Below are positions 9,684 through 64,000 of a DNA stretch of 64,000 nucleotides, piece after piece. Where the stretch lies: contig JAXLNO010005255.1 in NCBI GenBank assembly GCA_038087875.1, positions 1 through 64,000 of the forward strand, written 5' to 3'. The notes beneath the pieces are model-generated. The model searched no databases and was not told the origin of the DNA. It was given only the letters and a program-made list of their open reading frames with translations. The stretch is from Malacoraja senta. Lineage: Eukaryota. A program made the position numbers and the translations under genes. Within the stretch, counting starts at the first letter, position 1, and every line of letters starts with the position of its first letter.

Positions 9684-9796
9684 TCACATCACTGCTTCTC
9701 CGTGGACACGGAACGGTAGAGGCAAGTGTATTCTGGATGGCCCCAGTTGTTATTCACCCGCAGTTCAGTGAATTTGTAAACGGCAGCATCTTTATT
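9684..9796 (-). CDS. SUN domain terminal exon (NKDAAVYKFTELRVNNNWGHPEYTCLYR...), with 1-nt deletion
   Basis: Acceptor tttgtag|AAT. As written it ends YRSVSTEKQ* (stop at 9689-9691). Adding one base restores YRFRVHGEAVM* (stop at 9684-9686). This exon is not in the ORF track. Confidence 0.92.
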
Positions 9797-41493: not shown

Positions 41494-43953
41494 TTTTTTT
41501 TTTTTAATTTTAAAAAAGTTATCGACTGCTGGAAGGAAGATGGTGTACTAGCCATAAGCTTCTGGGATGCACCACAGTGACAGAAGCAAATGACCACGGA
41601 TCGAACAGGCGGCCGCCGAGAACATCCCGGCGGGCCAGTGAAATCAAGGACAGACCCGGCAGCCGCCGAGAACAAAGCTAGACTCGGCCGGTCGCCTGTA
41701 GCCATATGTGCCGGCAGGTTTGGTTCACCGGTGTCAAGAGCATCCCGGTGGAAGCTGCTGAGCTTGGCCCAGAAACCCGGAGAGTCGTGGAGGAGGGAGC
41801 CACTGCCGCCGCTGGGCGCAAGGAGTGGGCCGCTAAGAGAGGGACTGAGGTATTACCTCCAGGATAGGGGTTGCCTCCCGGGACACAGAGCCAGTTGGGC
41901 GACGAGAGGGACGTCAGTTGGCTGGCCGAGCTGGTCGAGGGTGACGGAGGAGGCCCCCCTGGCAATAGCCCGGGGTTTAACTGAGCTTACCTGGATCGGG
42001 GGCGCTCCAGTAAATCCAACATACGGACCGGACATTGGACTTTTTCTTTTGTAAATACTGCCAAATTATGGCGACGGGAGCAAGAATTTCACTGTGCAGT
42101 GCATAAGTGACAATAAAGAATCATTGACACATTGAAGTCAGAATCAATAATGCGGAAGTGCGAGTGCTGAAGTGGGAATGGTGAAGAACTTCAAATTCCT
42201 CGGCATGAACAACCTGTTGCATTTTAGTCACTGGCGCAGAACTTTGAAAATAATGGACGTTTAACAATCCATCTGCAGCACTAATTAGAAACAGAGAAAG
42301 CAGGTGCAGGAGTAGGCCATTAGGCCCTTCAAGCCAGCACCGTCATTCAATATGATCATGGCTGAGCATCCAGAATCAATAGCCTGTTCCTGCTTTCTCC
42401 CCATATCCCTTAATTCTGTAGCCCTAAGATCTAACTCTCTCTTGAATACATCGAGTGAATTGGCCTCCACTGCCTTCTGTGGCAGAGAATTCCACAGATT
42501 CACAACTATCTGGGTGAAAGCGTTTTTCTTCATCTCGTTCCTAAATGGCCTACCCTTTACTCGTAAACTGTGACCCCTGGTTCTGGATTCCCCAATATCG
42601 GGAACATTTTTCCTGCATCTAACTGTCTAATCCCTTAAGAATTTTATATGCATCTATAAGATCCCATCTCATCCTAAATTCCAGTGAATATAAGCCCAGT
42701 CAGTCCATTCTTTCCTCATATGTCAGTCCCACAATACCGGGAAAATAAATATTTTACTTTTTTATTGAACAATATCCTTGATTTTATTGCTTTAAAAAAA
42801 ACCATTCTGTTCCAGTCCCACCACAGAGATTTTTTGCTATATAATTCTTTGGCTCCTTTCTGCCTTCAATCAATTGAAAGCCAGAGTGGTAAAGACACTA
42901 TTCATAGCATTGAGTATAAGAGTCAGGAAGTTATATGCTGCTTTATGGAACTTCAAAGATAGACACAAAATGCTGGAGTAACTCAGCGGGACAGGCAGCA
43001 TCTCTGGGTAGAAGGAATGGGTGACGTTTCTGGTTGAGTCCCTTCAGGCTGAAGAGGAAAGGGAGACACGGAGATAAGGAAGTGTAAGGTATGAATGAAT
43101 AACATCAAAGGAGATGTAGTTCAAAGAAAATGTAGAATAGATCATTGTTAGCTAGGAGAAGGTGGAACGAGGCACGCAGAGATAATTTTTTATCGGGGAC
43201 AGTCAGACTGGTCGGAAAATAGAACTTCAGATAGGCTACTTTTAGAATATTATGGGCATTTCTGGTTGCCCCAATGCAGGATGAATTTGGAAGCATGGAA
43301 TTAGTGCAGAGGTGGTTTGACAGAATAAGGACAGGGAAATCATTACACGTGCATTGTCCAATTATTATTACTTAAGCAATAACAGTAAAGTGGAATAAAG
43401 ACAGACACAAAAATGTTAGATAGAGCTTTAGGGGCTGGTGCAATCAGGGGATATGGGGAGAAGGCATGTACGGCTTATTGATTGGGGACGATCAGCCATG
43501 TTCACAATGGATGGCAGTGCTGGCTCAAAGGGCCGAATGGCCTCCTCCTGCACCTATTTTCTATGATTCTAAAAAGCTGGAGTAACTCAGCAGGTCAGAC
43601 AGCACTTCTGGGAAAAAGGAAAAGGTGACGATTTGTGTCGAGACCCTTCCCGAAATGTCACCTACTCCTTTTCCCCAGAGATGCTGCCTGACCCGCTGAG
43701 TTACTCCAGCTTTTTGCATCTGCCTACAGTAAAACAAGCATCTGCAGTTCCTTCCTACACAGTAAAGTAGACTATCTGGTTTATCTAAAACTTTAGTTTG
43801 TGGAATTGACTGCATTCTGAATTGTGAAATAGTTATACTTTGAGAAACATCTATTCGGTTGTAAGATGCTATGTGAAATATGATTTTGTAATTGTTGTCC
43901 TTAAAACACCAATATAATCCCTACCATAAAACCTGATCCTTAAACTATATTCA

Positions 43954-44024
43954 CTGGCAATTAGTGACAAGTGGTCTCATTCCCATTGGATCTGGTTATC
44001 AGGTTTGTGTACACATGGACCAAT
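43954..44024 (+). promoter_or_regulatory. Candidate class I promoter: X1/X2-like + Y box (ATTGG) + CCAAT
   Basis: CTGGCAATTAG-TGACAAG at 43954-43971, TTCCCATTGG with ATTGG at 43985-43989, and CCAAT at 44020-44024, all 100-170 nt upstream of the leader ATG. X2-Y spacing is about 5 nt shorter than recalled for HLA-B. Confidence 0.35.
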
Positions 44025-44127
44025 AATTAGCTTCACACCAGAGTTCTGTTAAAAAAGTACAAGAGAATATGTTACTGTTGCTGCATTTACTCTGCTGGTT
44101 AAATAGTGCTGTAAGCAGCTGTTAAAC

Positions 44128-44179
44128 ATGCTTCTTTTTACCTTACTCAACACTTACGGTGTGGCCACTGTCTCGTCTG
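44128..44179 (+). CDS. MHC class I-like leader exon (MLLFTLLNTYGVATVSS)
   Basis: ATG, then 17 signal-peptide-like codons, then G|gtaagc. The phase-1 donor joins alpha1 as G+AT = Asp. Intron 1 would be 8.5 kb and contain the DIRS element. Confidence 0.75.
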
Positions 44180-47100
44180 GTAAGCAATGCTCTTTCTACT
44201 TGTGAACTTTGGGGAAACAACAAAACTGATTCTATTTACTGTTGCACAGTCCCTGTGTTTGCCCTGGGTTCATTGTCTTGGATGTATTAATTGAATGATT
44301 GAATTGAATGTATTAATAATTTTGGGTAACGGTCATTCCTGAGTTGTGAAGGTTCCTGTGAGGTTATATATACTATGGTTACCTTGGTAATCCATTGAAG
44401 AGAAGAACTGAATACATGTAAATAATGAACATAGAGCATAGTACAATACAGCATAGGAGCAGGACCTTCAGTCCTTCAGTCTGAAGAAGGGTCTCGACCC
44501 AAAACGTCACCCATTCCTTTTCTCCAGAGATGCTGCCTGACCCGCTGTTACCTCAGCATTTTGTGTCTACCTTCGGCCCACAATGTCTGTGCCGAACAAA
44601 ATAGTAAGATTAAACGAGAACTTACCAGTTTGAAGTTTGATCTGTATTTTATGAGGAGTTACGATGAGGGATTACGTGAAGACCCCGTTCAGCACGCATG
44701 CGCGACATTCTTCAAAGCAGCGGTGTGGAATCACAGGAAACACAATAATAGAAATAAACATAGTAAAGAAAAGGAGAACTAAGATACCTGTTGATCTATA
44801 TATTTGAGGGTGGGAGCAGAGGGCACGTAATCCCTCATCGTAACTCCTCATAAAATACAGATCAAACTTCAAACTGGTAAGTTCTCGTTTAATCTTACTA
44901 TTTTACTTCGGAGTCACGTGAGTGACTACGTGAAGACTTCAAAGCTCTGTGATTTCAAACCGTGTAACAGTTCATACTTCACTCGCTGCCGAAGTCATTC
45001 AAGGGAGGAAGTATGTTATCGTAATCAACCATAATCTGTTTGTAAACAATAATGGTATCTATTAAACAATAACAAAAGACAAAATGCTCCCCCGGGCTTA
45101 AATTATATATTTTTGCAGATTTTAAAACTCTTTCTGCAAATAACACAGGTTCTGCTAGCGGCTTGTGGTAGAACGTTTGGAACGTTTTCTCCATGTTCAT
45201 TCTTTTAGCCGCCGATGTGGATGCTGCCCTGGTGGAGTGAGATGTATATACATCAGTATCTACTCCAGCAGCTCCCAGTACCTGCTTGAGCCATCTCGAG
45301 ATGGTTTGGCTCGACACCCAACCATGAGGTTTCTTGTGGCTGACCCATAAGGCTTTTTTTTATTATTTATTTATTTATTTATTTATTATTATTATTATTT
45401 TTTTTCCCCTTCTCCCTCGAGAATCTCTTGTTGTGTTGATGTAAGTGAATAAGTGAGTCATGTCACACAACCGTAGGTCAGGTGGGTATGCCCGGAAATC
45501 CATAACTAGGACTCAAGTACCTGGCTTGCTCTGCTTTAGCAGCTCCTGAATGGTGAATGAGACCCGGTCTGGTGTTATAACCATGTTGTCCAGTCGCAGT
45601 AAGTGGAGGGACTGGACTCTTTGTGCTGAGACTAGTAGCATCAGCATGACCATTTTCAGGGTTAGCTTTTCCAGGGTGAGAGACCTGGCTGGGGACCATC
45701 CCCTTAGGTATGTCAGGATCACACTGACATCCCAGATTTGTGTATACCTAGGTCTAAGAGGGTTGGAGTTGACGATACTCCTCATGAGTTTGATCACCAG
45801 CGGGTGAGACCCTATGGCCTGTTGTCCTGGCACCTGTTTTAAGTAGGCTGACAGCGCACGTCTGGCAGTATTGATGGCGCTGTAGCTCAATCCTTCATTA
45901 TGGTGAAGGCCCCGCAGGAACTCCAGTACATTGGTTATGGTTGCAGATGAGTACGTTGTCCCAGTAGTCGAGCAGTATCTTTCCCACTTCCTGATGCTCG
46001 ATAGGTATTGTTTCCTGGTGGACATACGGTGTCATCATGTTGATGGTCCTGTCAGACAATCCCAGTCCCAGCAGTGGTCTTTTGATAATCTGCAACCCAG
46101 TAGGTTAATTTTGGCATGGCATGGATGCCTTATGCCTGATACAGGGTGCGTCAATAGGTCTGGGCTACTGGGAAAGGTCATAGGAGTTTCGATGACCATG
46201 TCGAGGACCACTGGGAATCATGGCTGTGTAGGCCAGTTTGTACTATCAAAATACCTGAAGCAGAGTCCATCTGTATTTTGCGTAGTACCCTACAGATTAA
46301 GGCAGAAGGGGAAAAAGCATAGAAGAAATCTGTCTCCCAGTTCAGCACGAATGCATCTATCGCTGCTGCCTCAGGGTGTGGTTCCCAAGGGACATACATT
46401 GGTACGTGGTGATTTAGTCTGGATGCAAAGAGATCGATATCTGGTGTGCCATATTGGTTTGTAATTTTAGCAAAGCTCTAGGATTTAACATCCATTCGGT
46501 GTTTATCATTGAATTTGCATGACCTGGCACTGTATTTAGCTTACCTGGTAGGTAAGTTGCTGATAGCCAAATATGTCTATCGACCCACCATTACCAGATT
46601 GTGTTGACCCAATTGTCACATGATATCGATTTTATTCCGGCCATATGGTTAATATAGGCCACCACCGTGATATTATCAATTTGTAAATGAACATGCAAGT
46701 TGTGCATATTCCTAGAATATGCTTTAAAACCATAAAATGCACCCAACATTCCCAAATAATTTATGCCCAGTGTTTGTAGTAAAGACGAGTCTAGGTTAGT
46801 CCATCTACCACCTGTGCTGGATATGGTATTAGTTGCTCCCCAGCCTTGAGCACTGGCATCTGTTTGTATAGTTAACGTTGGGTTATTGATGATGATAGGG
46901 CTGGAACTATGCCAAATGTGTTATATCCACCATTGTAACTCTGATATTGCTTCAATGGGTAGTTTCATGGATCTGTCAAAGTGACCTGCATGTCGTTTCA
47001 ACGCCTGTACTTTTGCCCTTTGTAGGTGCTGATAGTGCAGGAGTCCAAATTGTGTAGCTGAAAATGCTGCTACCATTTTGCCAATTACTCTTGCCACTTG

Positions 47101-50100
47101 TCGGATGGTTGGTCGATTGCTTACCATTAAATTGTTGCACATCTGTGCCAATTCTGCTGCTTTACCTTTTGGCAACGTTACAGACATGTGGATTGAGTTA
47201 ATTGAATCCCAGATAGTCCATAGTTGTGGATGGCGTCAACTTGGATTTATCTGGATGTATGACAAACCCAGGGTTTCAACAATTATTTGGTAGCTAATAC
47301 AGCTGATTTAGCCAACTCCATGGTTTTGCCAACTATTAGGATATCATCAAGATACGCCATGACAATATGTCTTTGTTTCGCTAATGTTGCCAAGGCTGGT
47401 TTTAATATCTTGGTAAATAGTCTAAGGCTGTAAATTTTCAGGTATCTGCGATGACCCTTGTGAATGGGTACTGAATAGTAGGCATCTTTTAATTCAATGC
47501 TTGCCATAAAGTATCCTTTGGAAATCAGTTGTTTAGTAGTTACAAATGTTTCCATTTTGAAATGTACATACTTAACAAAGGTATTTAGTGAGGTTAAGTC
47601 AATGATGATGCGACATCCACCATCTTTTTTACTTTTGGTAAATATATTTGAGACAAATTCCAAAGGATCATGTTTAGATTTCTCAATGACACCCTTTGTA
47701 AGTAACCTCACCAGTTCTGCTTGAGCCTCTAGTTCTCTTTGACTGAGAGGGTAAAGACCCTTTGGGTACGTGCTGAACTGGTGGCATGTTTTCGAAGGAA
47801 CTCTATTTTGTATCCCCGAATACTGTTAAGTATATAACTATCATTCGTGAGACACCTTCTGTTAGTACAGTTCCCCATTTACATGCTGGTAGGAACCAGA
47901 CCCACCTACCTCCATATTTATGGTAGTGTTCCTTTCTTCCGTTTGTTCATCCGTCGTTATACTGCTGGATGTACTGCTGATGTACTGCTGATTGGGGGTG
48001 GCGCATTTTCCATGGGGTCCGCTCTGGGCCCTGGCCTAAAAAGGCTTTCGGGGATAGTATGCGGACCCCGAGCTTTCACCAGTGACATAAATTTGACCTT
48101 GACTGGTGGACGCGGTGGGGTACTGCCGTCTGGTTTTTTGTGTGGGTCTGCTCGTTCCGGGGCCTGCCCTCATGAGGCCAAATGCTTTGGACTCCTCCTC
48201 CAGGTCTTTCACTTGTCCTTCCAATAACAGGATCTGCGGCTCTGAGGCCGGTGTTTTACACAGTCCTGCAAACCTGGGATTGAGGGCAGGTCTTATTCTC
48301 TCCTTGCGGAGGTTATTTATCTCATATTGGGTGTAGCACAGCAGAGCCAGAGTGTCTTGCTGGTTTGTGGTCATATCCACCCCATCCACGGAACGAGCAT
48401 AGGCTGTTATCCCTGTCGTCAGGAGCTTGAGGATTTTAGCTCCTGGTTCCGGATACTCTGTCCCCCCCCCCAGATTTGGCTGTTAACAGCCGGTACATTG
48501 AGCGAACTGCAGTTTTCCAGCTCTAGTGCCTCATTAAGTACCTGTCTTGTAGGGGTTTGAGGGACAGGTGGTTGATGCTGGCCGCCAGTTTTGGCTCCAA
48601 TGGCCGCCCTGCTCGTGGTGAAACCACGTAGCGAATCTCCACACCCAGCAGCTCTTCCTGATCCTGTACCCCAAGCGTACTCCCGACATCTTCAGCCAAT
48701 GACCCCTCTTCCTGACCAGCCCAGCCCTGGTCGCCAACGCTGCCCTGCTTTGAGGGGAAAGCGATGGCCAGTGCATTGTAGAGCACTGCTGTGGGAGTGC
48801 CTGATCCCCCTGGCGAGACTGCTCTAGCTCCTGAAGCAAGTCTCGCTGGAGCAGTTGCTCCATGAGCCTTTCCATTCGGCTCAGGCGGCTAGCTCTGCCG
48901 CTCTAAGGCGGACCCTCCTCATCGGAGTCAGACATAACCGGCCGGTTTGTTTGTTTGTTTTTTTTTTAAAACTTTTCCTCCAGCCCGCTGCCGCTCATCA
49001 GGCTGCGCTAGCGGGACTGGGCTCGGCTCGGTCTCGATGAGGGTGGACCGCCGCATATGCGGTCCAGGTGCCGCCTCTCGCCCCCCACTGATGGAAAACT
49101 CCCGTTCTGTTGGAGTCGGACGGGGGGCGGTTTTCTTCCTTTGCCGTGCTGCTCCTGTTCCCAGTTCCTCTGGAATAGAGAGCAGAGCAGAGCACAGCTT
49201 GCGGATTACGACCTCAGAGTAAGACTTACCTGAAGGTCCGCTGTTTATTTTCACCGACTTGTAGCGGGAGCGCCTGTACTCCCGGTCGTCGCTGTTGCAC
49301 TGCGTGAACGCTAATGTTGCGCATGCGTGCTGAACGGGGTCTTCACGTAGTCACTCACGTGACTCCGAAGTAAAATAAACTAATCTCCTCTACCTGTATG
49401 TGATCTGTATCTGGCCATTCCCTGCCTAACTATGTACCTATCCAAAAGCCTCTGAAATGTAACTGTTATATCTGCCACCATCACCACAACCACCACTGGC
49501 AGCGCGTTACAGATGTCCACCACCCTCCACATAAAACAACTTGCTCCGCTCATCTCCTTTGAACATTGCTTCTCCAACCTTAAAGTGATGTTCTCTGGTC
49601 TTCAACATTTCCACCCTGTGAAAAAGGTTCTGGCTGTCCACTCTGTCTGTGCCTCTCACCATGTTATGCACTTTCATCAGGTCTCCCTTCAACCTCCAGT
49701 ATACAAGAGAAAACAATCCATGTTTGTCCAATCTGTCCTTGCACTAATGCCTCAGACAGAATTCAGGTAAACCGGTGATGTGCACTTTCAATAAAGAAGT
49801 GACTTCTGCATTAGTAGGTGTCCCACCTCTCCAAGATTTCCTCAGCTGGTGTTAGGCACCCACATGATGGTAAAATTCAGCCTGCATTAAATGACCAATC
49901 AATGTTGTGTTAATGTTGTTGCCATCTTGTTGTTTGTTGCATGCTTCCTGTCCTGCAGACCCTATCCATTACCCCACCACCACTTCCCCAGAAGACAATA
50001 ATGAGATTTAAGACGCTTGAGGATAGGCACGTGGATATGCAGGGAATTGAGGGATATGAATCATGTACAAGCATGAAGAGTTTAGTTTAACTTGACATCA

Positions 50101-53100
50101 TGATCGGCACAGACATTGTGGCCGAACTCCAGCCCATTACACCCTTAATGAACAAAAATCTATCAATCTCAATCTGGAAATTTGCAAGTGGGCAAGATGT
50201 TCAACAGATTACAGAATCGAGAACCAGAGGACATAGGTTTAAATTGAGGGGGGAAAGATTTAATGGGAATCTGATGAGCAATTTCTTCCCACACAATGGT
50301 ACCTTTCTAACTATTCTGACATTCGTCAAGGCTTAGAGATTACAAACCTGTAATCGGATGCTCGTCCTGAAAGTTTAATCCCATTCCTATCAGATGGAAG
50401 TAAATATAATGGTGATGGCCGTGTTGAAATAATAACATATAAAACAAAACTCCTTGGCTGTGGAGTGTTTTGCGAAGCCACATGGATTTTATCCTTACTA
50501 TTCCACTCTTAGCCTTCTTATGTTTCTCCTGGTAACACTGAAACAGACACTTCTAACTCTGCCCTCGGGGCCCCTTCTCACTTCACTTAAACACATGAAC
50601 TTTGACACTGTCTGGTGTGCTGCATGTAATCTTTATCACAGAACAAATACTGCTTGTTCGTGTGGAAACAAGAAACTGCACATGCTGGTTAATACACATA
50701 AAATACTGGAGTAATTCAGCAGGTCAGGCAGTATGTCTGGAGAACATGGTTAGGTGATGTTTCAGTTGAGACAAGTGTAGGAAGGAATGCAGATGTGTAA
50801 GAAGGAACTGCAGAAGCTGATTTAAACCGAAGATAGACAATAAAGCTGGAGTAACTCAGCGGTACAGGCAGCATCCCTAGAGAGAAGGAATGGGTGACGT
50901 TTCGGGTCGAGACCCTTCTTCTGACTGCTGATGCAGATGCTGGTTTACACCGAAGATAGATACAAAAGGCTGGAGTAACTCAGCAAGTCAGGCAGCATCG
51001 CTGGAGAAAAGGAATAGGTGGAGTTTCAGGTCAAGACACTGCATCAGACAGAGTCGGGGGTGCATATATTTCATTGTACTTTTTCATATCTCTCGGTTCT
51101 CTGTCCCCTGACTCTCATTCTGAAGAAGGGTCTCGACACGAAACGTCACCTTTTCCTTTTCTCTGTAGATGCTGCCTGACCCACTGAGTTACTCCAGTAT
51201 TTAGGCCCTGTTTATTACAGTCTCCACCCTCCACCTCCACCCTCCCCCCCATGGTTATTTCCTATGGTTATTCCAGTTTCCCCGCACGTCCCAAAAATGG
51301 CGGGCTGAAAGGTAAGTTGGCCAGTGTGAATTGATCATGCATATGTATTAGAATTGGTGGAGGGGATGAGGGAGGTGTTAATGGGAGATTGGCAAATATT
51401 AAATGGGTTAGCGTACTACAAGTACAAATAGGTGTTTGATGGTTACCACGAACTTGGTGGGCTAAAGGGCCTTTTAATGTGCTGTACCCAGAGGACATAA
51501 GTTTAAGATGAGGGGGGAATGATTTAATAGGAACCTGAGGCGTAGCTGTGTTACACAAAAGGTGGTGGGTGTACTGAATGAACTGCCGGAGAAGGTACTT
51601 CAGGCACGTACTGTCACGACATTTAAGAAACATTTAATCAGGTACATGGATAGGATAGGCTTATAAGGATATGGGCCTCAGTCAGCTGTAGAGCCCATGT
51701 CAATCGATATTTCTCAGGTGGAGATTAACAGATTCTTGATCAATACAGGTTTCAAGGGTTATGGGGTGCAGGCAGGAGAATGTGGTTGATAGGGAGAGAT
51801 AGATCAGCCATGATTGAATGGCCGATGGGCTGACTGGCCTAATTATTCTCCTAGACCTTATTTACTGATGAAATACAGGCAGTGTAGATGGGGCATGTTG
51901 GTTGGTGTGGCAAGTTGAGCCATAGGCCCTGATTCCCTGCTGTATGACTCTTTGACTTTACCTCTCTATGATTCTATAAAGTCTCCTTGACATTGTCCAG
52001 TTTCTTAATATAATAAAATATTCTTCAAATTTTGGAATATTGTAACTAGTAGAACCTATCGACATGATAGACAATAATAGATCTTTGAAGATGGGAAACA
52101 ATCCAATACGATCATTCAATACCTCGACCATAATTGGTGGAGTAGGTATCAGAGCCCATCATGCCAACTCTTGACGAAGGCTCAGTGGTGCAGCAGTAGA
52201 CTTGCTCCCTTATCTCGATTACAGCACCATAGACCCAGGTTGGATCCTGATTACGGATGCTGTCTGTACGGAGTTTGTCCATTCTCCCCATTACCGTGTG
52301 GGTTTTTTCCCGAGATGTTCGGATTCTTCCCACATTCCAAAGACGTACAGGTTTGTAGGTTAATTGGCTTGGTGTAGAATGTAAATTGTCCCTAGTGTGT
52401 GTAGGATAGTGTTATTGTGTGGGGGTTGCTGGTCAGTGTGGACTCAGTGGCCCGAAGGGCCTGTTTCCATGCTGTATCTCTAAGCTAAAAACTAAACTAA
52501 AGGCTCCTGACCCAAATTGTCACCTGATCATTGATGCTGCCTGCCCCACTGAGTTCATCCAGCACTTCCATCTGCAGGTCCTTGTGACTCCCTTATTCAA
52601 AGTTATTGTATTGTTATCAGTTTTAGCATTAATAACTTAGTTATTTTCAGTGAATGATACAATCATACTTATTTTTGTTTATGCATTGCAGATTTACACC
52701 ATCTTGCATTTTACTACCTGTTGAACCATGGATTGAATGAGCTGCCTGAGTACAGTATGGTAGCAATGCTGGATGACCTCCAGATAGCATATTTTGACAG
52801 CACACTAGAGCGGGCTGTTCCCAGACAGCGATGGATGGCCCAGTCTTTCCCGCAGGATCAATGGGATTCAATGGCCATCACAGTTGCAGGTTTTCATGGG
52901 ATTGTCAGAGGAAATGCTGAGATAGTCTACCAACAGCAACATGGTATCTCGAGTAAGTGTCGTGACCGGACCTGGGGTAGACACCCAGTGATGGCACAAA
53001 TGGATTTTGTTTTAGTTTTGTTGCTGTCACATGATTCTCTGATACACTTTTTTTGCATGTTAGTCAATCACATCAAAGAAAACTATTCATAAATACAATC

Positions 53101-56100
53101 AAACCAAACTCGTACAATAGGTAGAGCAAAGAGTGCAGAATGTAGTTCTCAGCATTGTAATGTACCAGTGCCAGAGAGACAAAGTCCAGTGTCTACAATG
53201 GGGTTGAGGTGAACCCTAGCATAAGGGAGGACTGTTCAGAAACCTGATAACATAGGGGAGGAAACAGTTACTGAGTCTGGTGGTGCACGCTTTAATGCTT
53301 ACGTACCTTCTGCAGGAAGAAGAAGGAATGACCAGAGCGGGATGAATCTTTGATTATGTTGTCTGCTTTCCTGAGCCAGTTGAAATACAGATGGATTCAC
53401 TGGTGGGGAATCATGTTTGTGTGATCGATTGTGCTACATCTCCACCTCCCTGCCATTTCCAGCGGTATTGGGCAGAACTCTTTCCAAACTAAGTTGTGAT
53501 GCAACCTGTCAGTGTGCTTTCTATGGCACATTTGTAGAAGTTTGTAACAGTCATTGGAGATGCCGCATTTCCTTAGTCTCCTGAGGCAGTAGGGGAACCA
53601 GAAACTCTCAACCTTTTTCACTTCAGCACCATTGATGCTGTTTCAGACATTTACTCCATCACATTTTGATAGAGACACGGCCCATCGTCTATATTTAATG
53701 TGTCCTAACTGCTGAACACCCATTGACAACAGTTGGCTGGTGATAGTCTCTTTATGGGTTAAGCATTTGATATTTAACACCAGTAAAAAGTGGATGGATT
53801 GGATCATCTGTTTTATTGGGCTGGAATGAGGGAGAAACCATAGTTTATTTATAGCCTGATCACCTAGAGATGGGACCTTGATTAAGCTGGTTGATGGTGA
53901 CTATGATGTATTCCCTCAACAATAATATTCTGTTAATCCAGCATTCCCTCAATATTGGCAACAATCCACAGAGAGTGTAGCAATCCCACACAGTGCAACA
54001 GCCTGATGTACTTCCCATCTGCATTGCCTTAACCTTCAGACTGACCTGTTCACTGTATAACATTGCCCATCTGACAATGCACTCCTTCCTCTGTTCTTTA
54101 TGTACGAAAGTGCAGAATCTGAGTTCTACCCTTCTGACACAGCAAAACTTCTTTAGTGTTACATCCGCAACAGTAAAGCTTCCCCCCTCAACACTTGAGG
54201 TTAGTCCATGCCCTCAGTATATAGACCATGGGTCATTGAGTCACACATCATGGAAACCGGCCCTTCTGCTCACTGAATCCACATTGATCATCATTTGTAC
54301 TAAGATGGAGTCACAGCAAACTGCAGATGCTGCCAATCTGAATTAAAAACAAACAGGAGGAACTCAACGAGTCAGGCAGCATGCTGTGGAAAAATGGACA
54401 GAAAACATATGAGACCAGGACCATTTAGAGTGATGGAGTAGGGTGGAGAAAGCTGGAAAATAAAAGTAGTCTGTGTAGGATACTGTTAATGTGCGGGGAT
54501 CACTGGTCAGTGCGGACTAGGTGGGCCGAAGGGCCTCTTTCCGCGCTGTATCTCTGAGCTAAACCTGCTCCTATGCTGTACAGCTCCATGTTGTGTTCTG
54601 TTATGCCTGTTTGTACCATGCTGAGAACTGATTTGTAAATTGCCTCTCCCTTCCATCCACTCTCCCCAACACAAATCCTCCACCCCTACCTCAGCCCCAG
54701 CTGTTTGCTTTGTGCAGGGTTTCTGCGGCTGTGAAGTGGACAGTGACAATTCCACTGATGGGTTTGTCAGACTGGGTTATGATGGGGAGGATGCCTGTGC
54801 TTTTGACAAGGACAGAATGCGCTGGATTGCACTACGTCCAGATTTCCAGATGCTAGCAGATCGGTGGAACGTCAACACCTTCATGAACAAGTATTTTAAA
54901 GATCTCCTGGAGAAGGACTGTGTGAAGTGGCTGCGGATATATCTGGAGTGTGGACAAGAAGCACTACAGAGGAGAGGTACACGACGTAGGCACTCTGACT
55001 GATGGGCCAGAGGATATCCTCTGGATAGATCAGGTGGGAAATATCATGCACTTCAGGCTGTCACTTGAGTAATTATTTAGTTTAGTTTAGTGATACAGCG
55101 CGGAAACCCACCGAGACCGCACCGACCAGCCATGCCCGCACACTAACACTATCCTACACACACTAGGGACAATTTGCATTTATACCAATCCAATTAACCT
55201 ACAAATTTGTACGTCTTTCGAGTGTGAGGGGAAACCGAAGATCTCGGATAAAACCCATGCAGGTCACAGGGAGAACGTACAAACTCTGTAAAGACAAGCA
55301 CCCGTAGGTAGTAACAAACCCAGGTCTCTGGCGCTGTAAGGCAGTAGCTCGACCGCTTCGCCACCCTGTTCTACGATGTGGGTATCAGTAAATTGTCTGG
55401 CAACGTGCCTCTTAGATGGAGCCAGTGGGTAGGAAGTGCAAGTGAAAGATAAATATTGTACCAGTGTCCTCTATCCACAGTCATATAGATATTCAGGAAA
55501 TGGAGGGATATGTATCTTGGTCTTATGTTTAGCATTGACCTTGTGCCTGAAGTGTCTGTTGCTGCGCTGATCAGAAACCCAATCAGATTCTCTATTTGCC
55601 TCTATTACTCCTTGGGATGGTGACATCCAATTTCCAACAGTTCTCTGGTTGAAGAACTTCTTCCTCCCATTCCCTCTTGGAATATTTAGTGTTATTATTC
55701 AGCTGAGATTCATGAACAAGTAGAAGCAATCATGTCTACAGTATCAATCCCAATGGTGAGTTATACTCCTCCATTGGGCCTGCATTCCCCTTACATCTGC
55801 GCTGTCAGTTCAAGTCTGGAGCTAAGATAAGGAGCATGTCAGTGATATTAAAACTAAATGTTTTGTTGTTTTGCCAGAAATGCAAAATGAAAAGAGAAAA
55901 GGCTGTAAACTTTGTGCAAGATAGAACTGCAGATGCTGGTTTACACTGAAGATAGAAGATGTTGGAGTAACTCAGTGGGTCAGATAGCATCTCTGGCCTT
56001 CTCTCCAGAGATGCTGCCTGACCTGCTGAGTTATTCCAGCATTTTGGGTCTAGGCTGGAAACTTTGTTCAGCTGGAGAAAAAACTGATTGGGAAAGAGGT

Positions 56101-59100
56101 GAGTTGCAGTGATCTTACAATTGAAGGCTTTTGTTCATGTCTTCACTGATTCTGACGCTTCCTACACTTGCAGAAACCCCTGAGGTGTTTATTGGGATTA
56201 AACGTGATGGGTCACAATCACTGAGACTCTCCTGCCTTGTCACAGGCTTCTACCCACGGGCCATCGATGTAACGTGGCTGAGAGATGGTGAGGGAGACCA
56301 CGAGTCTGAATCCAGTGATCTGTTGCCCAATTGGGATGGGACTTACCAGCTGAAGAATACAATTCAACTGAGTAGAGAAGATGTGGCAAAATTCTCCTGT
56401 TACATTGAACATGCAACTCTGCTGCAGGGAGTCAATGTTCCACAGGGTAAGTGGCAAGTCAATGAGGCTGATCACTTGAGAGAATAAACCTCCTGGACTG
56501 AGATAACAGCCTCAACACACTCTTAACTAAGCTGTGCATTTAGATTTTAGACTTTAGAGATATGGTGCAGATACAGGCCCCTCAGCTCAATGAGTCCTCG
56601 CTGAACAGTGATCATCCCGTACATTTACACTAACCAACACACTGGGGACAATTTACAATTTTACCTAAGCCAAGTAACCTTCAAGCCTGTATGCCTTTGG
56701 AGTGTGGGAGGAAACCGGAGCACCCGGAGAAAACCCACGCAGTCACAGGGAGAACATACAATGTCCTTGCAGACAGCACCTGTAGTCAGGATCAAACCCA
56801 GGTCTCTGGTGCAGTAAGGCAGCAGCTCTACCGCTACGCCACTGTGCCACCCATTATTAATTTGTGGTTATCTAATTGCCCAGAATTATTGATAGTCAAT
56901 GGAATGTGGTTTAATTTAAGAGATACAGCACAGAAACCGGCCCTTTGGCCCACGAGTCTGCGTCAACCAGCGATCCCTGCACACTTACATTATCTTACTT
57001 ATTAGAGACAATTTACAATTATACCAAGCCAATTAACCTACAAACCTGTATGTCTTTGGACTGAGGGAGGAAACCGGAGATCCAGGCAAAACCCACGCAG
57101 GTCCGGGGGAGAAGGTACAAAACTCTGTACAGATGGGACCCGTAGTTAGAATTGAACCGGGTCTCTGGCGCTGTAAGGCAGCAGTTCCACTAAGTGGGCA
57201 AAGCAGAGCCAAATGGAATACAGTGTAGCAAGTGTCTGGTTTTACATTTTGGCAGTCGGAATAAAGACATAGACTATTTACTAAATGGGGAGAGAATTCA
57301 GAAATCTGAGCTACAAAGTGGGAGTAGTAGTGCAGGATTCCCAAATAGTTCATTTGCAGATTGAGTCAGTGGTAAGTAAGGCAAATGCAATGCCAGCATT
57401 CATTTCGGGGGGACTAGAATATAAAAACAATGATATAATGCTGAGGATTTATCGGGCACTGGTGAAGACACATTTGGAATATTGTGAGCAGTTTTGGGCT
57501 CCATATTAGAAAGGATGTGCTGGCTTTGGAGAGGGTCCAGAGGAAGTATGTCCTGGGGATGATTGATTTAACGTATGAGGAACGTTTGAAGTCTCTGGGC
57601 TTCTACTCGTGGGAATTTAGAAGGATGAGGGGAAAATCTCTGAAACCTACCAGTTAATGAAAGTCCCAGTTAGTGGATGTGGATAGGATGTTTTCAGTAA
57701 TGGGAGAGTCTAGCACAGCCTCACAATGAAAATACGTACTTTCAAAATGGAGATGAGGAGGAATTTCTTTAGTCACAGGGTGGTGAATCTGTGGAATTCA
57801 TTGATACAGACAGCTGTGTGGGTCAAGTCATTGCATATTTTAAAGCAGAGAATGATAGGTTCTTGATTAGTACGGGTGCCAAAAGTTACAGGGAGAAGGC
57901 TGGAGAATGGGATTCAGAGGTAAAAATAGATCTGCCATGACTGAATGGTGGAGTAGACTCAATGGACTGAAAGGCCAACTTCTGCTCCAATGGTAAAAAT
58001 TATTCTTATGTCACCCTTAACTCACACATCCAAATGTAGGAAGCAAGATAGGCTGATCCTGGCCAAGGTCTCTTATCTTATTTCTTGGGCATCTAGCTAA
58101 TTTTTTAATAGTAGTTAGTTGCACAAAAGGCCAATAGTGGTGCCACATCCAACCCCATTATCAGGCTGAAGTAGCAGCACCTGTTCTGTAGCTGACTTAT
58201 TTGTTCCAGTCAAGACCTCTGCAAATATCTTCACACCAGGGCCAAGCTGACATGGTTAAAATTGCTGGTCAGTACAAATAGACAGTAGTGTTAATGTCTG
58301 AGTGTGCGTGTGTGTGTGTGTGTGTGCGCTCATGCGTGTGAGACAGAGAGAGGGGGAGGGGGAGGGAGAGAAAGAGAGTGTGTGTGTGTGAGAATATCAA
58401 ACTCTCAGATATTGAAATATCAGCAAAGTTTAAAACCTTTGAAGTTTTATCAACTATAAATGGGTTCACTTTTATTTGCTAAAATAACAATGGTCAACAT
58501 AAGAAAATAGCCTTGTTGACCTCTACACTGCAAATTGACCACCAGGGGGCGCTGACCTGTGTGCGGCTACCCAGCCAGCAGCTGTCTGTCCTTTCACCTT
58601 TATTTTTTATTTTAGTCAGTAAAGTGTTTTGTTTTGGAGGTCTAGACTTTTTTGTGTGTGGGGGGGGGGGAGGGGGAAACTACCTTTCAGGGTCCCTACC
58701 TGGCTGGAGAGGCAGCTTTTCTCCGGGCTGCAGCTTCGACCCGTCCTCGCGGCCTACCAGTGGGCCTGGAGCGGCGTTTCCTGTCGGGGACCGCCCAGAG
58801 CCTCGGCTTCGGCACAGCGCTGGAGCGCTATCGCGGAGCGGGCGGTGCCTTGCCCGGGTCGCCGCGCTGGAGCTCCGGTGAGCTGAGGATCGCTGGAGAA
58901 AACATCGCGGAGCTGCGGGACTGTGGAGCGACCAGCTGAACTTTACACCGGGAGCCTGGGATCTCTAGATGAGAGCGCCAGTTGTGGAGCTCCAACCGGC
59001 GCGGCCTTGTTGGCTTCGGAAGCCGCGGCCCCCAGTGCGGAAGCGGCCGTTCCAGGGTTCCGAGGCCGCTGGGAGGACTCTCCCGACGCTGGAGCAACAT

Positions 59101-59857
59101 CACCCGGCGAGAACGGCCTGGAACATCGGGCCTCCGTAGAGGCAACTGTGGAGGCCTCAATGGGCCCGACTATGGGTGAACTGGGGTTGGGGACTGGACT
59201 TTGTGCCTTCCCTCATGGTGGGACCCATTGTGGGGGGGTGTTCAGTGTTAAGACTATCTTGGTGTTGTGTCTGTATTCTCTCTCTTTTTTGTGTGCTGCA
59301 TAATGGCAAAAAGCATTTCACTTCACTACACCCGGGTGTATGTGAATGTGACAAATAAAATATCTTGAATCTTGAATCTTTATTTATGACATATGTTTGA
59401 TTCTTTAAATTCATAATTAAATGCTGCAGATAAAATCTCAACGCTAATATGAACTTCAAAGATTTTTCATTGATCTATTTAAACATCCATCGTCTGGACA
59501 ATTACATAAATCTAAGACTTTGTTACTTTTTATTTAGATGTGAACAATGCTAGTTTAATGTAGATAATAAAATCATTTCAAAGTCATAATTGATCAATAA
59601 ATGTTTAAAATGAACTATATATGCCAACAGAGATGGCAGCGAAAGAAGATATAAAGATTAGGATCGTGACTGGAGCTGTAATCGTTCCTCTCTTTCTCCT
59701 GGGGATCATCCTTGGAATTGGTTGCTGGAAGAAGAGGAAAAAGATAAAACCTTTCAATGAACAGGGACCAGCTGACAACAGCAGAGACCAGGAGACGACT
59801 GCAGTGACCATGAAGCACAATCAACTTCCATTGGGATGCAGAGGTCTACCGGAATGA
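44128..59857 (+). CDS. Non-classical MHC class I-like heavy chain gene (leader, alpha1, alpha2, alpha3, TM/cytoplasmic)
   Basis: Five exons joined by phase-1 introns, as is standard for class I genes. The alpha1/alpha2 motifs (FDS...P...W, QxxxGCE, YDGED, CVKWLRIYLE) and the IgC1 alpha3 (LSCLVTGFYPRAIDVTW, DGTYQL, FSCYIEH) are present. The lineage cannot be assigned without an alignment. Confidence 0.95.
44598..49377 (-). mobile_element. DIRS1-type tyrosine-recombinase retrotransposon, structurally full-length, ORFs decayed
   Basis: Left ITR about 49270-49377. Right ITR about 44598-44710, with inverted match 44676-44704 to 49319-49348. The ICR at about 44826-44938 is complementary to both outer ends. 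Fragments of gag, RT (MAYLDDILI), RNase H, methyltransferase-like (DAFVLNW...YAFSP) and YR (HSTRAAS). No TSD. Confidence 0.95.
52175..52500 (+). mobile_element. HE1-type V-SINE (tRNA-derived head, CR1-type tail), near full length
   Basis: tRNA-like head (ggtgcagcagtaga...ggttggatcctga), core tgctgtctgtacggagtttgt...ggtttgtaggttaattggc, and tail gggcctgtttcc...ctaaactaa. Confidence 0.85.
52692..52952 (+). CDS. MHC class I-like alpha1 exon (DLHHLAFYYLLNHGLNELPEYSMVAMLDDLQIAYFDS...YQQQHGIS)
   Basis: Acceptor ttgcag|AT and donor A|gtaagt. 261 nt, open reading frame. Confidence 0.93.
53050..53650 (-). mobile_element. Rex1/L2-like LINE 3' fragment in MHC intron 2
   Basis: LRRLRKCGIS and a degenerate ESILT.CIT.W region. 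Confidence 0.6.
54701..54976 (+). CDS. MHC class I-like alpha2 exon (VCFVQGFCGCEVDSDNST...LEKDCVKWLRIYLECGQEALQRR)
   Basis: Acceptor ccccag|CT and donor G|gtacac. 276 nt. Canonical C101/C164 equivalents are present. Confidence 0.95.
56174..56446 (+). CDS. MHC class I-like alpha3 (IgC1) exon
   Basis: Acceptor cttgcag|AA and donor G|gtaagt. 273 nt. Both IgC1 cysteines, FYP, W and DGTYQ are present. Confidence 0.96.
57260..57995 (+). mobile_element. Degenerate CR1 3' fragment in MHC intron 4
   Basis: YRALVKTHLEYCEQFWAPY motif and CR1 tail. Confidence 0.8.
58300..58390. repeat. (TG)n/(GA)n microsatellite cluster
   Basis: Directly visible. Confidence 0.9.
58530..59370 (+). repeat. Unclassified GC-rich interspersed repeat (related element at ~41494-42130)
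   Basis: T-rich start, GC-rich body and LINE-like ...tgacaa(a)taaa tail. No coding potential. Confidence 0.45.
58536..58554 (+). promoter_or_regulatory. CTCF motif
   Basis: TGACCACCAGGGGGCGCTG preceded by CTGCA (upstream-motif-like). Confidence 0.6.
59631..59857 (+). CDS. MHC class I-like TM + cytoplasmic exon (single exon)
   Basis: Acceptor ccaacag|AG (phase 1, weak pyrimidine tract). Hydrophobic IVTGAVIVPLFLLGIILGIGCW, then stop-transfer KKRKK, tail and TGA. Confidence 0.8.
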
Positions 59858-60325: not shown

Positions 60326-60911
60326 TTGTATCAATGCTGACTGATGGCTTTACATTCAGCCATTAATTTTTCAAGTGCTGTCTTCACTGCAGTTAAAGGT
60401 CTGTCTCACGAATCTGCGGTCATTGGCGGCGAAACGGGAAGAATCTGCCGCCATAGACCGCGCACTCGTGAGAAAGAACAATTCCCGGGCCGTGCGACGG
60501 TGTTCCCAACACCGCGCGGTGCAAAAATAAAATCGACAATGTCGAAAACACAATATTCACCGCACAACCTCCACCAGTGATGCACGAGTGCGCACGGCCG
60601 CTCGCACGGCCCGCCGCCAGTATGGCTCGAGCGCCGTGCGTCAAGCCTCCACTGCCACAGCCTCCGCCAGTGAGGCACGTGCCGCCGCCAGTGATGCACG
60701 TGTGCTGCACGGCCGCAGGCACAGCCACCGCTGCAGCGCCGCGATCTGGACAGCTGCCGCCACAACCCATCAGATTCAAAATGACGTCATCGCAGTCGGT
60801 CCGCCCTTTTTCTTTGCTGTTCACGTCCAAACCACGCGAGATCTGAGACTTCAACAGTGTAGCATTTTACCGCGTTTTTCAAACGGAGTATTTTGACAGT
60901 TGACTAGCAAC

Positions 60912-62883
60912 ATGGGGAGAACAAGGAGTGTGAAGAAATCGCTGCAGGATAAAGTACAGTATTCTAGTATGGGTGCTAATAAAATTCAGGTGCTGGAGGG
61001 TCCAGCCCCTGCCCCTGCCCCTGCCCCTGCTTCATTACCTGTCCCATCTCCTGCCCCATCTCCTGCCTCAACTGCTTCCACATCTGCTGCCCCATCTGCC
61101 TCTCCATCTGCTGGTCCATGTCCTACTCCAGCTTATGTCCCTGGATGGGTGTGGAACAGGTCTGGCTCACAGCCATATAATTTTTCCCGAGAGCAAGAGG
61201 GGGACCTGGTGGAATGGTATCAGTCCCACCATGAGCTGTACGATAAGACCAACCGTGATTTTAGGAACAGGGGTCTCCGTAACCTCATAATTGGAGAAAA
61301 GGCGAAGGAGTTCCATGACTGCTTTTGTAAGTACATATCTTTCAGTTTATCTACATTTCTGTGTTTGTAATTGAGGTTCAAATTCATATTATAATTTGCT
61401 CAACACTTATCTTCATTTATGCTATCTTTTCACAGATGACCAACTGTGCCAATGGCTAAAGAGTCAGAGGACACGGTTCGGCAAAATATCACAAGGTCTT
61501 GGCAAGTCTGGCTCTGGCAGTAGGAAACTGACTGACAGAGACCAGTGGATATATGACAAATGGGGGTTCGTCCGGGACCACATTGTAAGAGTGCACACGA
61601 AGGAAAGTTGCAGGAAGGTGAGTAACTCAGAAAATTATGTGACAATAAATATTAGTTGGGAAGTCAGTACAAAACACTTTTAACAATGATAACTTGTTCA
61701 CTTTCCCTGCTACGTCCGGATGGTCTTGCACATGTATGATACGCATTCACTTTCTTCTAGTGTACTGTGGGTGCATCAACGTGCGCGGACTCGAGTGAGG
61801 GTGAGCCTGATCCGCTAGAAGGACCTTCACATGGACCATCCGGGTCATGCACTGCAGTAGAACTGCAGCAGCATGCAAGACGGAAGCGGGTCAGCACAAC
61901 TGCGTCAGATAGCGAGGTGCCTGTCCAAACTCTGCAACGGGACATGTTCAGGGATGTAAGTGCTTTTGGATTACCCATCATCAAATCTCTTTCACTCCGC
62001 CCTACTTCCACGTTTCTCCATCTCATCCCACAATATAATTATCATGATTGTACTCTCTTGTTGCAGATCATGGAACAGGCAAAGACAACGTCGGGCATGA
62101 TCACCTCTTTCTCACAGCCAAGGACGTCCCATGAGAGAGTTGTGCATGCATATGCAATGTTCCTCAGGGAGGAGATGTTCTTAATCCCTGAGGAAAATTG
62201 GCAACGTTATAGCATGGAGGGATTGTCCTTGGCAAGGGCGCACAGACTTCCGCAGCCAGTAAAATATTTAAATCAAAGTTCATTGAAATTAAAAAAGTTT
62301 TAAATTAATGCCGTCTATGATTCATTTACTACTGTTTTCTTTGTGTTGCAGAGTCCGATAAGGCATATGCCATTAGTGCCACTGCAACAAAGGAGGATGC
62401 CACCACAATATCCCCACCAGGTACACTGTGAAACATTTTTGAGTCTTCAGCCTGACTCATGATTTTCTCTAACACACAGCTTGTGAAAGGTTGTGATTTG
62501 TTTTATATGATTTGTTTGGCACCGATACATATTGATACGCTTATGTGTTTTGCCCACAGGCAAGGATGGAATACCGTCCTGTGACATACCCCTGGATGGC
62601 AGCCCCCCCCCCCCCCACTATGTCAGTGGACACACCCCACCGCAACATAGTTCATCACGTGGCATGGATAGTCTTGGGGAAGGCGAATTCCATGTACAAT
62701 TTGAGGTTCCCGAAGATGGCACAAACTCCAGCACCGATGACGCAGACGTATATAATTAATAAGAATGACATGTGCCGTAGGAGTGACGTTGCCCCCAAAA
62801 TTCACTGTTGTGCCTGCTTGTGTGTTGCACATTACCGTTCAATTCACTGTTTTCTCACGACGTTATTTGTTTGCTTTCACTAA
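60912..62883 (+). CDS. Harbinger MADF/Myb-like DNA-binding protein, 6 exons (60912-61326, 61436-61617, 61761-61955, 62067-62258, 62352-62420, 62560-)
   Basis: Pro/Ala/Ser-rich N-terminus, then MADF-like LVEWYQSHHELYDK...WLKSQRTRFGKI...RDQWIYDKWGFV. All introns are GT-AG with compatible phases. The last exon is ambiguous at a 14-C run (stop at 62883 as written; an acidic C-terminus ending 62759 in the shifted frame). Confidence 0.8.
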
Positions 62884-63339
62884 TGAACAATGTTCTGTTG
62901 AATTGCTTGTTTTTCAATATGTTAATTGTTTCCACTAAATAAACAGTTTAAATTTAATATAGTATTGTGGAAAAAAGTGTCTGTTAATCGCGGCGTAGAT
63001 CTCATATGGAAACAACCTGAAATGATGGAATGCATCTCACATACAAAATCATTGATTTATTAGAGAAATAAAACACAAACAGGCATAGAATAGCATTGAA
63101 TTACAAAAAAATTTCATTATAAGCCATGAAAATAATACAATGGCATTTAAGCCCTTTCAAGATCAGGCAACTTTAAAATAGGTGATGTAGGTGGTACTAT
63201 TAACACAGATTCAATAATTTCGCAATGTAAAACCATCCATCAACATACATAGATCGCACTTTTGTAAGATCTGGGGCCTTCATGATCGGGTACCTCTGCC
63301 GTGAAAACACAACCCTGACATCCCCTGTTTGCTTTTGAT

Positions 63340-64000
63340 CCTCAAAACACATTGTCCTGGTGCGGATCAGGTTATGGAGGACACATGCCGCGTAGACAAT
63401 GGCCTGCACATTCTCGGGCTCCTGCTCCATTGTTGTAAGCAGGCATCTGAATCTGCTAGCAAGGATACCAAAAGCATTCTCCACTACCCTCCTAGCCCTG
63501 GACAGCCTGTAATTGAAGATCCTTTGCTCCCTTGACACCCCTCCTGTGAGGGTATGGCTTCATCATCCATGGCCTGAGTGCAAAGGCATCATCACCAACC
63601 AGTGCGTAGGGGATGTCAGGGATGTCAGGGTTGTCTTCTCCAGGCAGAGGTTCTGGATCCGGAAGGCCTGCTCTCCCTTCTTCCAATGCTTGCCCAAGGG
63701 AGGTCTCTCTCCAGATCCCTCCATCTGCGGCACTGCCAGGTGTGCCCACATTCACAAACATGAAGTTGTAGTTTGCATCTACCACAGCTAACAGCACGAT
63801 GGAATGGAACTTCTTGTAATTAAAGTACACAGAACCTCCCCCGGGTGGACACCGGATGGCCACATGCTTCCCGTCAACAGCCCCACATGTGTGCAGGAAG
63901 TTCCATCTGCTTTGAAAGCCGTGCGCCACACTCCTCCACCCGTCTGGTGTAGTTGGGCAGTCAATAAGCTCATCATATGTTTTGTTGATGGCATCACACG
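63340..64000 (-). pseudogene. Harbinger (HARBI1-like DDE) transposase, frameshifted and C-terminally truncated
   Basis: [62 protein letters not shown] and ACVLHN are present. +1 frameshift near 63541. Confidence 0.92.

Follow-up and report, generated by a model that had tools for sequence, protein, structure and literature searches.

We analyzed a 64,000-nucleotide stretch of the genome of the skate Malacoraja senta (assembly GCA_038087875.1, contig JAXLNO010005255.1, positions 1 to 64,000; hereafter, the window), which contains a class I gene of the type found in the major histocompatibility complex (MHC). The gene is complete, lies on the + strand, and runs through five exons from an ATG at 44128 to a stop codon at 59857. 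It is a member of the non-classical, CD1-like type of class I genes of elasmobranchs. We think it likely that it represents, in intact form, an old lineage of such genes with a low copy number; this lineage is the sister of the UGA lineage and also its tandem neighbor among the non-classical class I (MHC-Ib) genes of sawfish and zebra shark. Judging from its sequence, the likeliest function of the skate protein would be to hold a lipid-like, non-peptide ligand.

The class I gene

The spliced open reading frame (ORF) is 1089 nt long (362 codons) with zero internal stops, all of the introns have AG/GT splice sites, and all of the exon junctions are in phase 1. A preliminary reading of the window from the letters alone (the original prediction) had proposed a stand-alone class I gene here, and the end points that it gave are exactly the start and stop codons of the intact, correctly spliced gene. 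The protein has the features of a class I heavy chain: an MHC_I platform, a C1-set alpha3 domain, a transmembrane anchor, one domain per exon, and disulfide cysteines that align with those of other class I proteins (Table 1). The predicted structure of an ortholog (predicted local distance difference test score, or pLDDT, of 89.6) has the secondary structure elements in the order expected for class I.

The leader exon is the top match within 12.7 kb to the leaders of the shark orthologs (MLLVTLLNVYCVP.VSS), and its DNA is 98% identical to that of another skate, Leucoraja erinacea, and 88% identical to that of sawfish. The alpha1 exon shares 65-78% of its amino acids with shark and ray orthologs. 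The alpha2 exon has the canonical pair of cysteines (C101/C164) as well as an extra cysteine, at HLA position 99, that is invariant in the lineage. The introns are 88-91% identical to those of L. erinacea.

The two CCAAT/Y boxes lie 139 and 104 bp before the ATG, within a block that is nearly invariant in the alignment of skate with sawfish. From this pattern, the block is a candidate promoter element of the class I gene. A motif scan of the 600 bp upstream of the gene found no consensus site for NF-kB and no interferon-stimulated response element (ISRE).

Intron 1 is 8.5 kb long, and a DIRS-like retroelement fills 4.8 kb of it. The orthologous locus of L. erinacea lacks this element and directly joins the equivalents of window positions 44603 and 49372, so the insertion is recent and occurred on the M. 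senta side. The region of the DIRS-like element has a CpG-rich end at 48.7-49.4 kb. There are also CpG islands at 58501-59300, in intron 4, and at 60401-61000, just downstream of the class I gene; the former falls in a part of the intron for which the L. erinacea copy gives no alignment.

Table 1. Features of the 64-kb window. RT, reverse transcriptase; o/e, observed over expected; Ig, immunoglobulin.
Feature	Positions	Strand	Remarks
Last SUN-domain exon (..NNWGHPEYTCLYR)	9692-9796	-	1-nt deletion
SUN-domain exon (GLDDENQAEGVLLGPYTYNEGDSIQTFEVQ) in stop-free segment	15887-16135	-	
SUN-domain exon (PEVHPGNCWPFKGSQGF..DFSVY) in stop-free segment	17016-17231	-	Pfam Sad1_UNC 5.5e-18
SUN-domain exon (GGSVIHTRCTETIETKTILSLFGIPLWYQSHSPTAVIQ) in stop-free segment	19233-19427	-	
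Exon starting the SUN domain (..IVEEALKLYSADRVGLVDYALESAG) in stop-free segment	22090-22203	-	
SUN coiled-coil exon, most upstream recognised	27069-27245	-	assigned by composition and position only
CpG island, candidate SUN 5' end	41501-42100	.	CpG o/e 0.75, GC >0.55; 2 kb from class I ATG
Conserved block, putative proximal promoter	43975-44070	+	Y/CCAAT boxes: ATTGG 43985-43989, CCAAT 44020-44024
Class I leader exon	44128-44179	+	MLLFTLLNTYGVATVSS plus 1 nt, GT donor
DIRS-like retroelement in intron 1	44604-49371	-	tyrosine-recombinase and RT ORFs; Pfam RVT_1, Phage_int_SAM_4
Class I alpha1 exon	52692-52952	+	261 nt, phase 1; Pfam MHC_I 1.5e-5
Class I alpha2 exon	54701-54976	+	276 nt, phase 1; Pfam MHC_I 2e-16
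Class I alpha3 exon	56174-56446	+	273 nt; C1-set Ig domain, Pfam C1-set 4.9e-15
Class I connecting peptide, transmembrane helix, 44-residue cytoplasmic tail, stop	59631-59857	+	no YxxPhi motif
Harbinger-type DDE transposase remnant, downstream of class I gene	63203-63998	-	Pfam DDE_Tnp_4 2e-17

A lineage of sharks and rays that is sister to UGA

When we used the alpha2 exon for a HMMER scan of 1.84 billion representative proteins, a single protein was nearly identical (P0001 of L. erinacea, 96%), and the other single-domain matches were at most 44% identical. Over the sequences compared, L. erinacea is 90-96% identical to the skate gene. P0001 has orthologs in other rays (72% identical in sawfish and 66-67% in Mobula and Hypanus) and in eight sharks (54-60%), while other class I proteins are at most 36% identical. 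The original prediction had asked for the gene in other batoids and in sharks, and the lineage is indeed present in 4 rays and 8 sharks as well as in L. erinacea. NCBI's automatic name for these orthologs is "MR1-like".

The RefSeq model for P0001 includes 12 residues from an intron (GTRPRHSDWWNG) between alpha2 and alpha3 (at about residues 181-192). This model begins at alpha1, although there is a leader exon at the L. erinacea locus (L003:100-151).

We built a careful maximum likelihood tree of 62 proteins, which include a single CD1 sequence and no UFA sequence. The lineage forms a clade with maximal support (100/100), within which batoids and sharks form subclades of their own. Its sister is a clade of 17 UGA proteins (also 100/100), and the node that joins them has support of 93/98. 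The UGA clade (P0028, P0031, P0234-P0247) includes close relatives of PDB entry 9CH4, whose title is 'shark nonclassical MHC class I, UGA', and which is the best match to the skate lineage in PDB both by sequence (2.9e-60, 207 bits) and by fold (Z 28.8). The skate gene lies outside the clade of 9CH4-type sequences, in the separate clade of its own lineage. The other non-classical shark structure, UFA (8GM8), matches the skate lineage with 115 bits, 32% identity, and Z 22.2, which falls short of close similarity.

The original prediction had suggested that the gene might belong to a CD1-like lineage. In the free tree, the single CD1 sequence sits on a long branch at the root. Forcing CD1, the lineage, and the UGA clade together costs just 0.88 units of log likelihood (p = 0.40 in the approximately unbiased (AU) test, with one long-branch CD1 sequence), so a specific link to CD1 is neither shown nor rejected. 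What does hold is that the closest solved relative is UGA: a 2025 review describes UFA and UGA as CD1-like and MHC-linked and states that they are reported to bind lipids of the CD1d type (PMC12562908). In contrast, a forced clade of the lineage, UGA, and MR1 is rejected (AU p = 0.0007), and MR1 groups with tetrapod class I proteins.

The suggestion that the lineage is undescribed was partly correct. We found no author-named sequence of the lineage among the matches from our protein searches, and as far as the available sources go, the lineage is public but uncharacterised and unnamed. However, its sawfish member has already been mapped as an MHC-Ib gene (PMC10751288).

As for the other named lineages of chondrichthyan class I genes (UBA, UCA, UDA, and UEA), to our knowledge, UDA keeps its peptide anchors, UEA has been reported from sharks only, and UCA from Squaliformes only, and the skate gene would not seem to match these descriptions. 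We also considered an identity as EPCR, as human PROCR lies near SPAG4/SUN5, which would have given an EPCR-like synteny. We dropped this idea: unlike EPCR, which has only the alpha1/alpha2 platform, the gene has an alpha3 exon; its structural similarity to EPCR is just Z 18.4; and the neighboring SUN exons are of the SUN1/2 type.

Linkage to the MHC in sawfish and zebra shark

The sawfish ortholog (P0151; LOC127585976) is at CM019888.1:13,956,125-13,977,896 (NC_067438.1:13956125-13977896). In the portion of the sawfish MHC map that we could consult (Supplemental File 3 of Verissimo et al. 2023; PMC10751288), LOC127585976 is flagged as 'MHC-Ib'. BRD2 and B2M lie on one side of it, at 13.03-13.09 Mb, and COL11A2, RXRB, and HSD17B8 lie on the other side, at 15.1-15.6 Mb. 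After LOC127585976 come three more MHC-Ib genes, at 14.02-14.2 Mb, beginning with a UGA gene (P0243); the lineage gene (13.956 Mb) thus lies directly before UGA (14.020 Mb). The same tandem is found in zebra shark, where the lineage gene occupies 6.711-6.726 Mb and is followed by UGA at 6.753-6.794 Mb. The same zebra shark chromosome has another class I gene at 5.6 Mb, or 1.1 Mb away. The annotation of zebra shark also has a 564-residue gene model with no match in Pfam between the lineage gene and UGA (CM060542.1, about 6.729-6.751 Mb).

The original prediction had allowed for an MHC-unlinked lineage. Because the sawfish and zebra shark orthologs lie beside UGA in the MHC, this is refuted for the lineage, a result that we do not extend to the skate copy. 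Thus, the lineage is linked to the MHC, and a published map already includes its sawfish member. Furthermore, a published survey found zero MHC-Ib genes outside of the MHC in elasmobranchs (Verissimo et al. 2023; PMC10751288).

The absence of framework genes from the 64 kb is unremarkable, because in the part of the sawfish annotation that we consulted, the nearest annotated gene upstream of the ortholog is 86 kb away. (The same part of the annotation has a U1 small nuclear RNA (snRNA) gene 9 kb upstream.) Also, the window stops 4 kb past the class I gene, so a downstream UGA gene would fall outside of it.

A conserved hydrophobic groove that has lost most peptide anchors

To describe the groove, we transferred the numbering of HLA-A2 through sequence alignment, rather than using structure coordinates. 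Classical class I proteins hold the ends of the peptide with eight residues: Y7, Y59, Y/R84, T143, K146, W147, Y159, and Y171. The skate gene has F7, Q59, Q84, L143, R146, W147, L159, and Y171. In other words, five of the eight anchors are lost, two (W147 and Y171) are unchanged, and arginine takes the place of K146, so the full set seen in UAA is not present. The pattern is found across the lineage, with Q or H at position 59. The groove is also hydrophobic, at 24-25 of 37 positions, as compared to 17-20 positions in UGA and 15-17 in classical class I and MR1. The gene is thus non-classical, as originally predicted, with the majority of its peptide anchors gone and a hydrophobic groove.

Across the lineage, 19 of the 37 groove positions are invariant, including the cysteine at position 99 on the floor of the groove. 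This cysteine (codon at window positions 54724-54726; mature residue 96) lies two residues before C101, in the motif G-x-C-G-C-E. Position 99 is cysteine in all members of the lineage, from sharks and rays alike, but is phenylalanine in UGA and tyrosine in classical class I. Given its conservation in the alignment, this unpaired cysteine could matter for ligand capture. The skate copy has private cysteines as well, at mature positions 90 and 120. The glycosylation site at N86 is lost in the lineage, which has NST in a loop of alpha2 instead.

Between rays and sharks, members of the lineage are 66% identical in alpha1, 73% in alpha2, and 57% in alpha3; the corresponding values for UGA are 60%, 63%, and 60%. 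Because identity in alpha1 and alpha2 exceeds that in alpha3, the ligand platform is more conserved than the immunoglobulin domain. The ratio of non-synonymous to synonymous substitution rates (dN/dS) across alpha1-alpha3 is 0.21 versus sawfish and 0.15 versus zebra shark, which indicates purifying selection; for alpha2 alone, it is 0.10 versus sawfish.

The lineage and UGA also differ in their cytoplasmic tails: none of 14 members of the lineage has a YxxPhi motif, while 10 of 17 UGA proteins do. The UGA tails of both sharks and rays (P0235, P0238-P0245) end in YNAV, YNVI, YQTI, YENI, or YESI, which are YxxPhi sorting motifs of the CD1 type.

The SUN1/2-type neighbor and the rest of the window

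As originally proposed, the class I gene is head to head with a SUN gene: SUN1/2-type exons lie on the - strand, and the two genes point away from each other. SUN-domain exons are at about 22.1, 19.3, 17.1, 16.0, and 9.7 kb, and coiled-coil exons are at about 24.3 and 27.2 kb. When we compared the segment at 17016-17231 to PDB, it matched SUN2 (6.8e-23) and SUN1 (2.8e-21). In the window, we did not recognize the N-terminal exons or the 5' end of the SUN gene (no reference protein was used), and the CpG island 2 kb before the class I gene is a candidate for marking this 5' end. The nearest recognised SUN exon is 17 kb from the class I leader.

The SUN gene is probably damaged. Its last exon has a 1-nt deletion near 9.71 kb and reads ..YTCLYRSVSTEKQ and then a stop codon (SVSTEKQ-stop), while the neighboring frame encodes the canonical FRVHGEAVM-stop. 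The frameshift precedes FRVHG, so the Sad1/UNC domain lacks its C-terminal strand. The deletion indicates either a pseudogene copy or else an error in the assembly.

A SUN gene is absent from the sawfish chromosome 34 list and from the supplement text that we consulted (Verissimo et al. 2023; PMC10751288), where the sheets for sharks name few genes. We also found no SUN exons in the 10-kb flanks of the loci from sawfish, zebra shark, and L. erinacea, but these flanks are shorter than the 17-kb gap in skate. The SUN1/2-type gene is probably an addition to the neighborhood on the skate side, and a damaged duplicate. Its presence does not indicate that the class I lineage has moved out of the MHC.

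The original prediction had described the window as free of framework genes and of any second class I gene, and our searches agree. A search with tblastn and 15 class I proteins found no other class I sequence in the window beyond the five-exon gene. A sweep of the 98 longest stop-free segments with Pfam, which short exons could escape, turned up no domains other than those of reverse transcriptase, DDE transposase, integrase-SAM, zf-RVT, and Sad1_UNC. Besides the class I and SUN genes, the 64 kb is transposon-derived. A scan with Rfam (to position 56600) found none of the U1 snRNA or tRNA genes that the window might have shared with the sawfish region.

Proposed function and alternative explanations

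We propose that the product of the skate gene is a type I membrane glycoprotein in which an alpha1/alpha2 platform is followed by a C1-set alpha3 domain, a transmembrane helix, and a 44-residue tail, and that it presumably pairs with beta2-microglobulin. Its groove would have no clamps for the ends of a peptide and would be lined mostly by invariant hydrophobic residues. Most likely, it would show one or a few invariant ligands, either lipid-like or hydrophobic non-peptides of another kind, to a conserved receptor; this is suggested by the loss of the clamps, the hydrophobic lining, and the higher conservation of the platform relative to alpha3. Loading of the ligand may be independent of endosomal sorting by a tyrosine motif, because the tail has no YxxPhi, unlike the tails of UGA and most isoforms of CD1.

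Several observations weigh against the view that the gene is an intact and functional member of its lineage. When we searched sequencing runs with the gene, we matched only DNA-type runs and no RNA run. A 4.8-kb retroelement sits in intron 1. dN/dS relative to the L. erinacea copy is 0.47 (12 synonymous and 21 non-synonymous changes), and it is possible that constraint is relaxed among skate copies. L. erinacea has a second copy (P0019; JAMYXN010000412.1:53058-77289), on another unplaced contig, which is truncated at its 5' end: its alignment to the window begins only at 53122, and it lacks the leader and alpha1, yet it is annotated as a protein. The skate copy could similarly be a redundant duplicate. 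The SUN neighbor is missing from the sawfish MHC gene list, as far as we could consult it. Finally, the groove was assigned by alignment, and the ligand is a prediction.

Some of these observations could be explained if the class I gene and the SUN gene form a module that was copied several times in skates, so that the M. senta copy is silent or decaying and its frame is merely still open. The frameshift in the adjacent SUN gene, the DIRS insertion, the dN/dS of 0.47, and the truncated copy on another unplaced contig in L. erinacea all fit this scenario. The lack of SUN in the sawfish list and the second L. erinacea copy may point to a duplicated module specific to skates, or else to haplotigs. 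However, there is no damage to any of the five exons or splice sites, to either disulfide pair, or to the conserved NST site, and the promoter block is conserved. Also, there are too few substitutions relative to L. erinacea to set 0.47 clearly apart from 0.15-0.21. We consider a silent duplicate to be unlikely, but it deserves to be taken seriously.

A second alternative is that in the skate, this is an MHC-unlinked class Ib gene beside a bona fide SUN1/2 locus. A SUN1/2-type gene is its only cellular neighbor; SUN is missing from the sawfish chromosome 34 list and from those parts of the supplement text that we consulted; and a U1 snRNA gene lies 9 kb before the sawfish ortholog, while our scan of the window to position 56600 found no U1 or tRNA gene. 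Nevertheless, the orthologs of both sawfish and zebra shark sit next to UGA in the MHC-Ib cluster, and the published survey reports no elasmobranch MHC-Ib gene outside of the MHC (PMC10751288). A UGA gene downstream would not be visible because the window ends 4 kb after the class I gene, and the damaged SUN copy would be expected just as well if a fragment of SUN had been carried into the class Ib region. Overall, an unlinked gene seems improbable. The same can be said of a combined scenario, in which the UGA-sister gene was captured with a SUN1/2-type gene in a duplicating skate module that has several copies, at least some of them away from the class Ib cluster; we have little confidence in it.

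It seems quite improbable that the skate protein is a non-classical peptide presenter like HLA-E or Qa-1. It does retain W147 and Y171, its change of K146 to arginine is conservative, and the class I fold is predicted (pLDDT 89.6), but throughout the lineage, Y7, Y59, R/Y84, T143, and Y159 have given way to F, Q/H, Q, L, and L, and the groove is far more hydrophobic than in peptide binders. Finally, the gene is very unlikely to be the cartilaginous-fish ortholog of MR1 that the automatic names imply: when the alpha2 exon is searched by itself, the top-scoring PDB chains are indeed those of MR1 (64.9 bits), and as in MR1, the lineage has D-H/Q-W instead of E-Y-W at position 59, but the AU test and the placement of MR1 in the tree argue against it, Lys43 of MR1 aligns with alanine or valine, and the full-length scores to MR1 are equal to those to classical class I proteins from fish and sharks.

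Implications

UFA and UGA have only recently been proposed as the oldest lipid-presenting, CD1-like molecules. The lineage described here is a third, neighboring one, with a greasier and more conserved groove, an invariant cysteine on the groove floor, and no endosomal sorting motif. This suggests that the MHC of early jawed vertebrates already contained diverse systems for presenting non-peptide antigens. The lineage also provides a concrete protein for ligand elution and for structural studies. Because the lineage is MHC-linked wherever this could be checked, it poses no challenge to the picture in which all class I genes of elasmobranchs stayed in the MHC. If the gene were instead part of a duplicating SUN module outside of the class Ib cluster, it would be the first elasmobranch MHC-Ib gene outside of the MHC, against the published rule.

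Comparison with known systems

The SUN-domain exons of the skate neighbor are about 70% identical over 57 residues to human SUN2 and SUN1, which are proteins of the LINC (linker of nucleoskeleton and cytoskeleton) complex. Like SUN1 and SUN2, the neighbor has coiled-coil exons upstream of the SUN domain, but its C-terminal FRVHG strand is destroyed by the 1-nt deletion.

Classical class I proteins (shark UAA, 6LUP, and a fish protein, 5H5Z) share the exon plan, the disulfides, the C1-set alpha3 domain, and the transmembrane anchor with the lineage. They are about 30% identical to it, and five of their eight terminal anchors are replaced in the lineage. MR1 resembles the lineage in that alpha1 and alpha2 are extremely conserved relative to alpha3 and in having histidine or glutamine at position 59. 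However, Lys43, which forms the Schiff base in MR1, is replaced by alanine or valine, and the two are not related beyond their membership in the class I family.

Chicken CD1-1 (3JVG) and human CD1d (6V7Y) have Z scores of 25.6 and 23.2 to a model of the lineage. A hydrophobic groove without peptide anchors, and conservation of the non-polymorphic type, are common to CD1 and the lineage. In contrast, sequence identity is only 20-24%, the lineage has no YxxPhi tail, and relatives of the lineage are in the MHC proper. Shark UFA (8GM8) is non-classical, MHC-linked, and reported to be CD1-like (PMC10751288, PMC12562908), and in these respects it is like the lineage; the skate alpha1 exon matches UFA (2.6e-12) better than it matches most classical class I proteins.

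Shark UGA (9CH4) is the most similar of these systems. UGA is only 38-43% identical to the lineage, it keeps Y7 and Y59 where the lineage has F7 and H/Q59, and most UGA tails end in YxxPhi, while the tail of the lineage is long and does not contain this motif. Nevertheless, the two share several motifs in alpha1 and alpha2 (LNHG, VPRQxWMA, AGFHG, and MNxYFKxLLEKDC). Like the lineage, UGA has a low copy number and is found in both sharks and rays, and in both sawfish and zebra shark, it is the tandem neighbor of the lineage within the MHC-Ib cluster.

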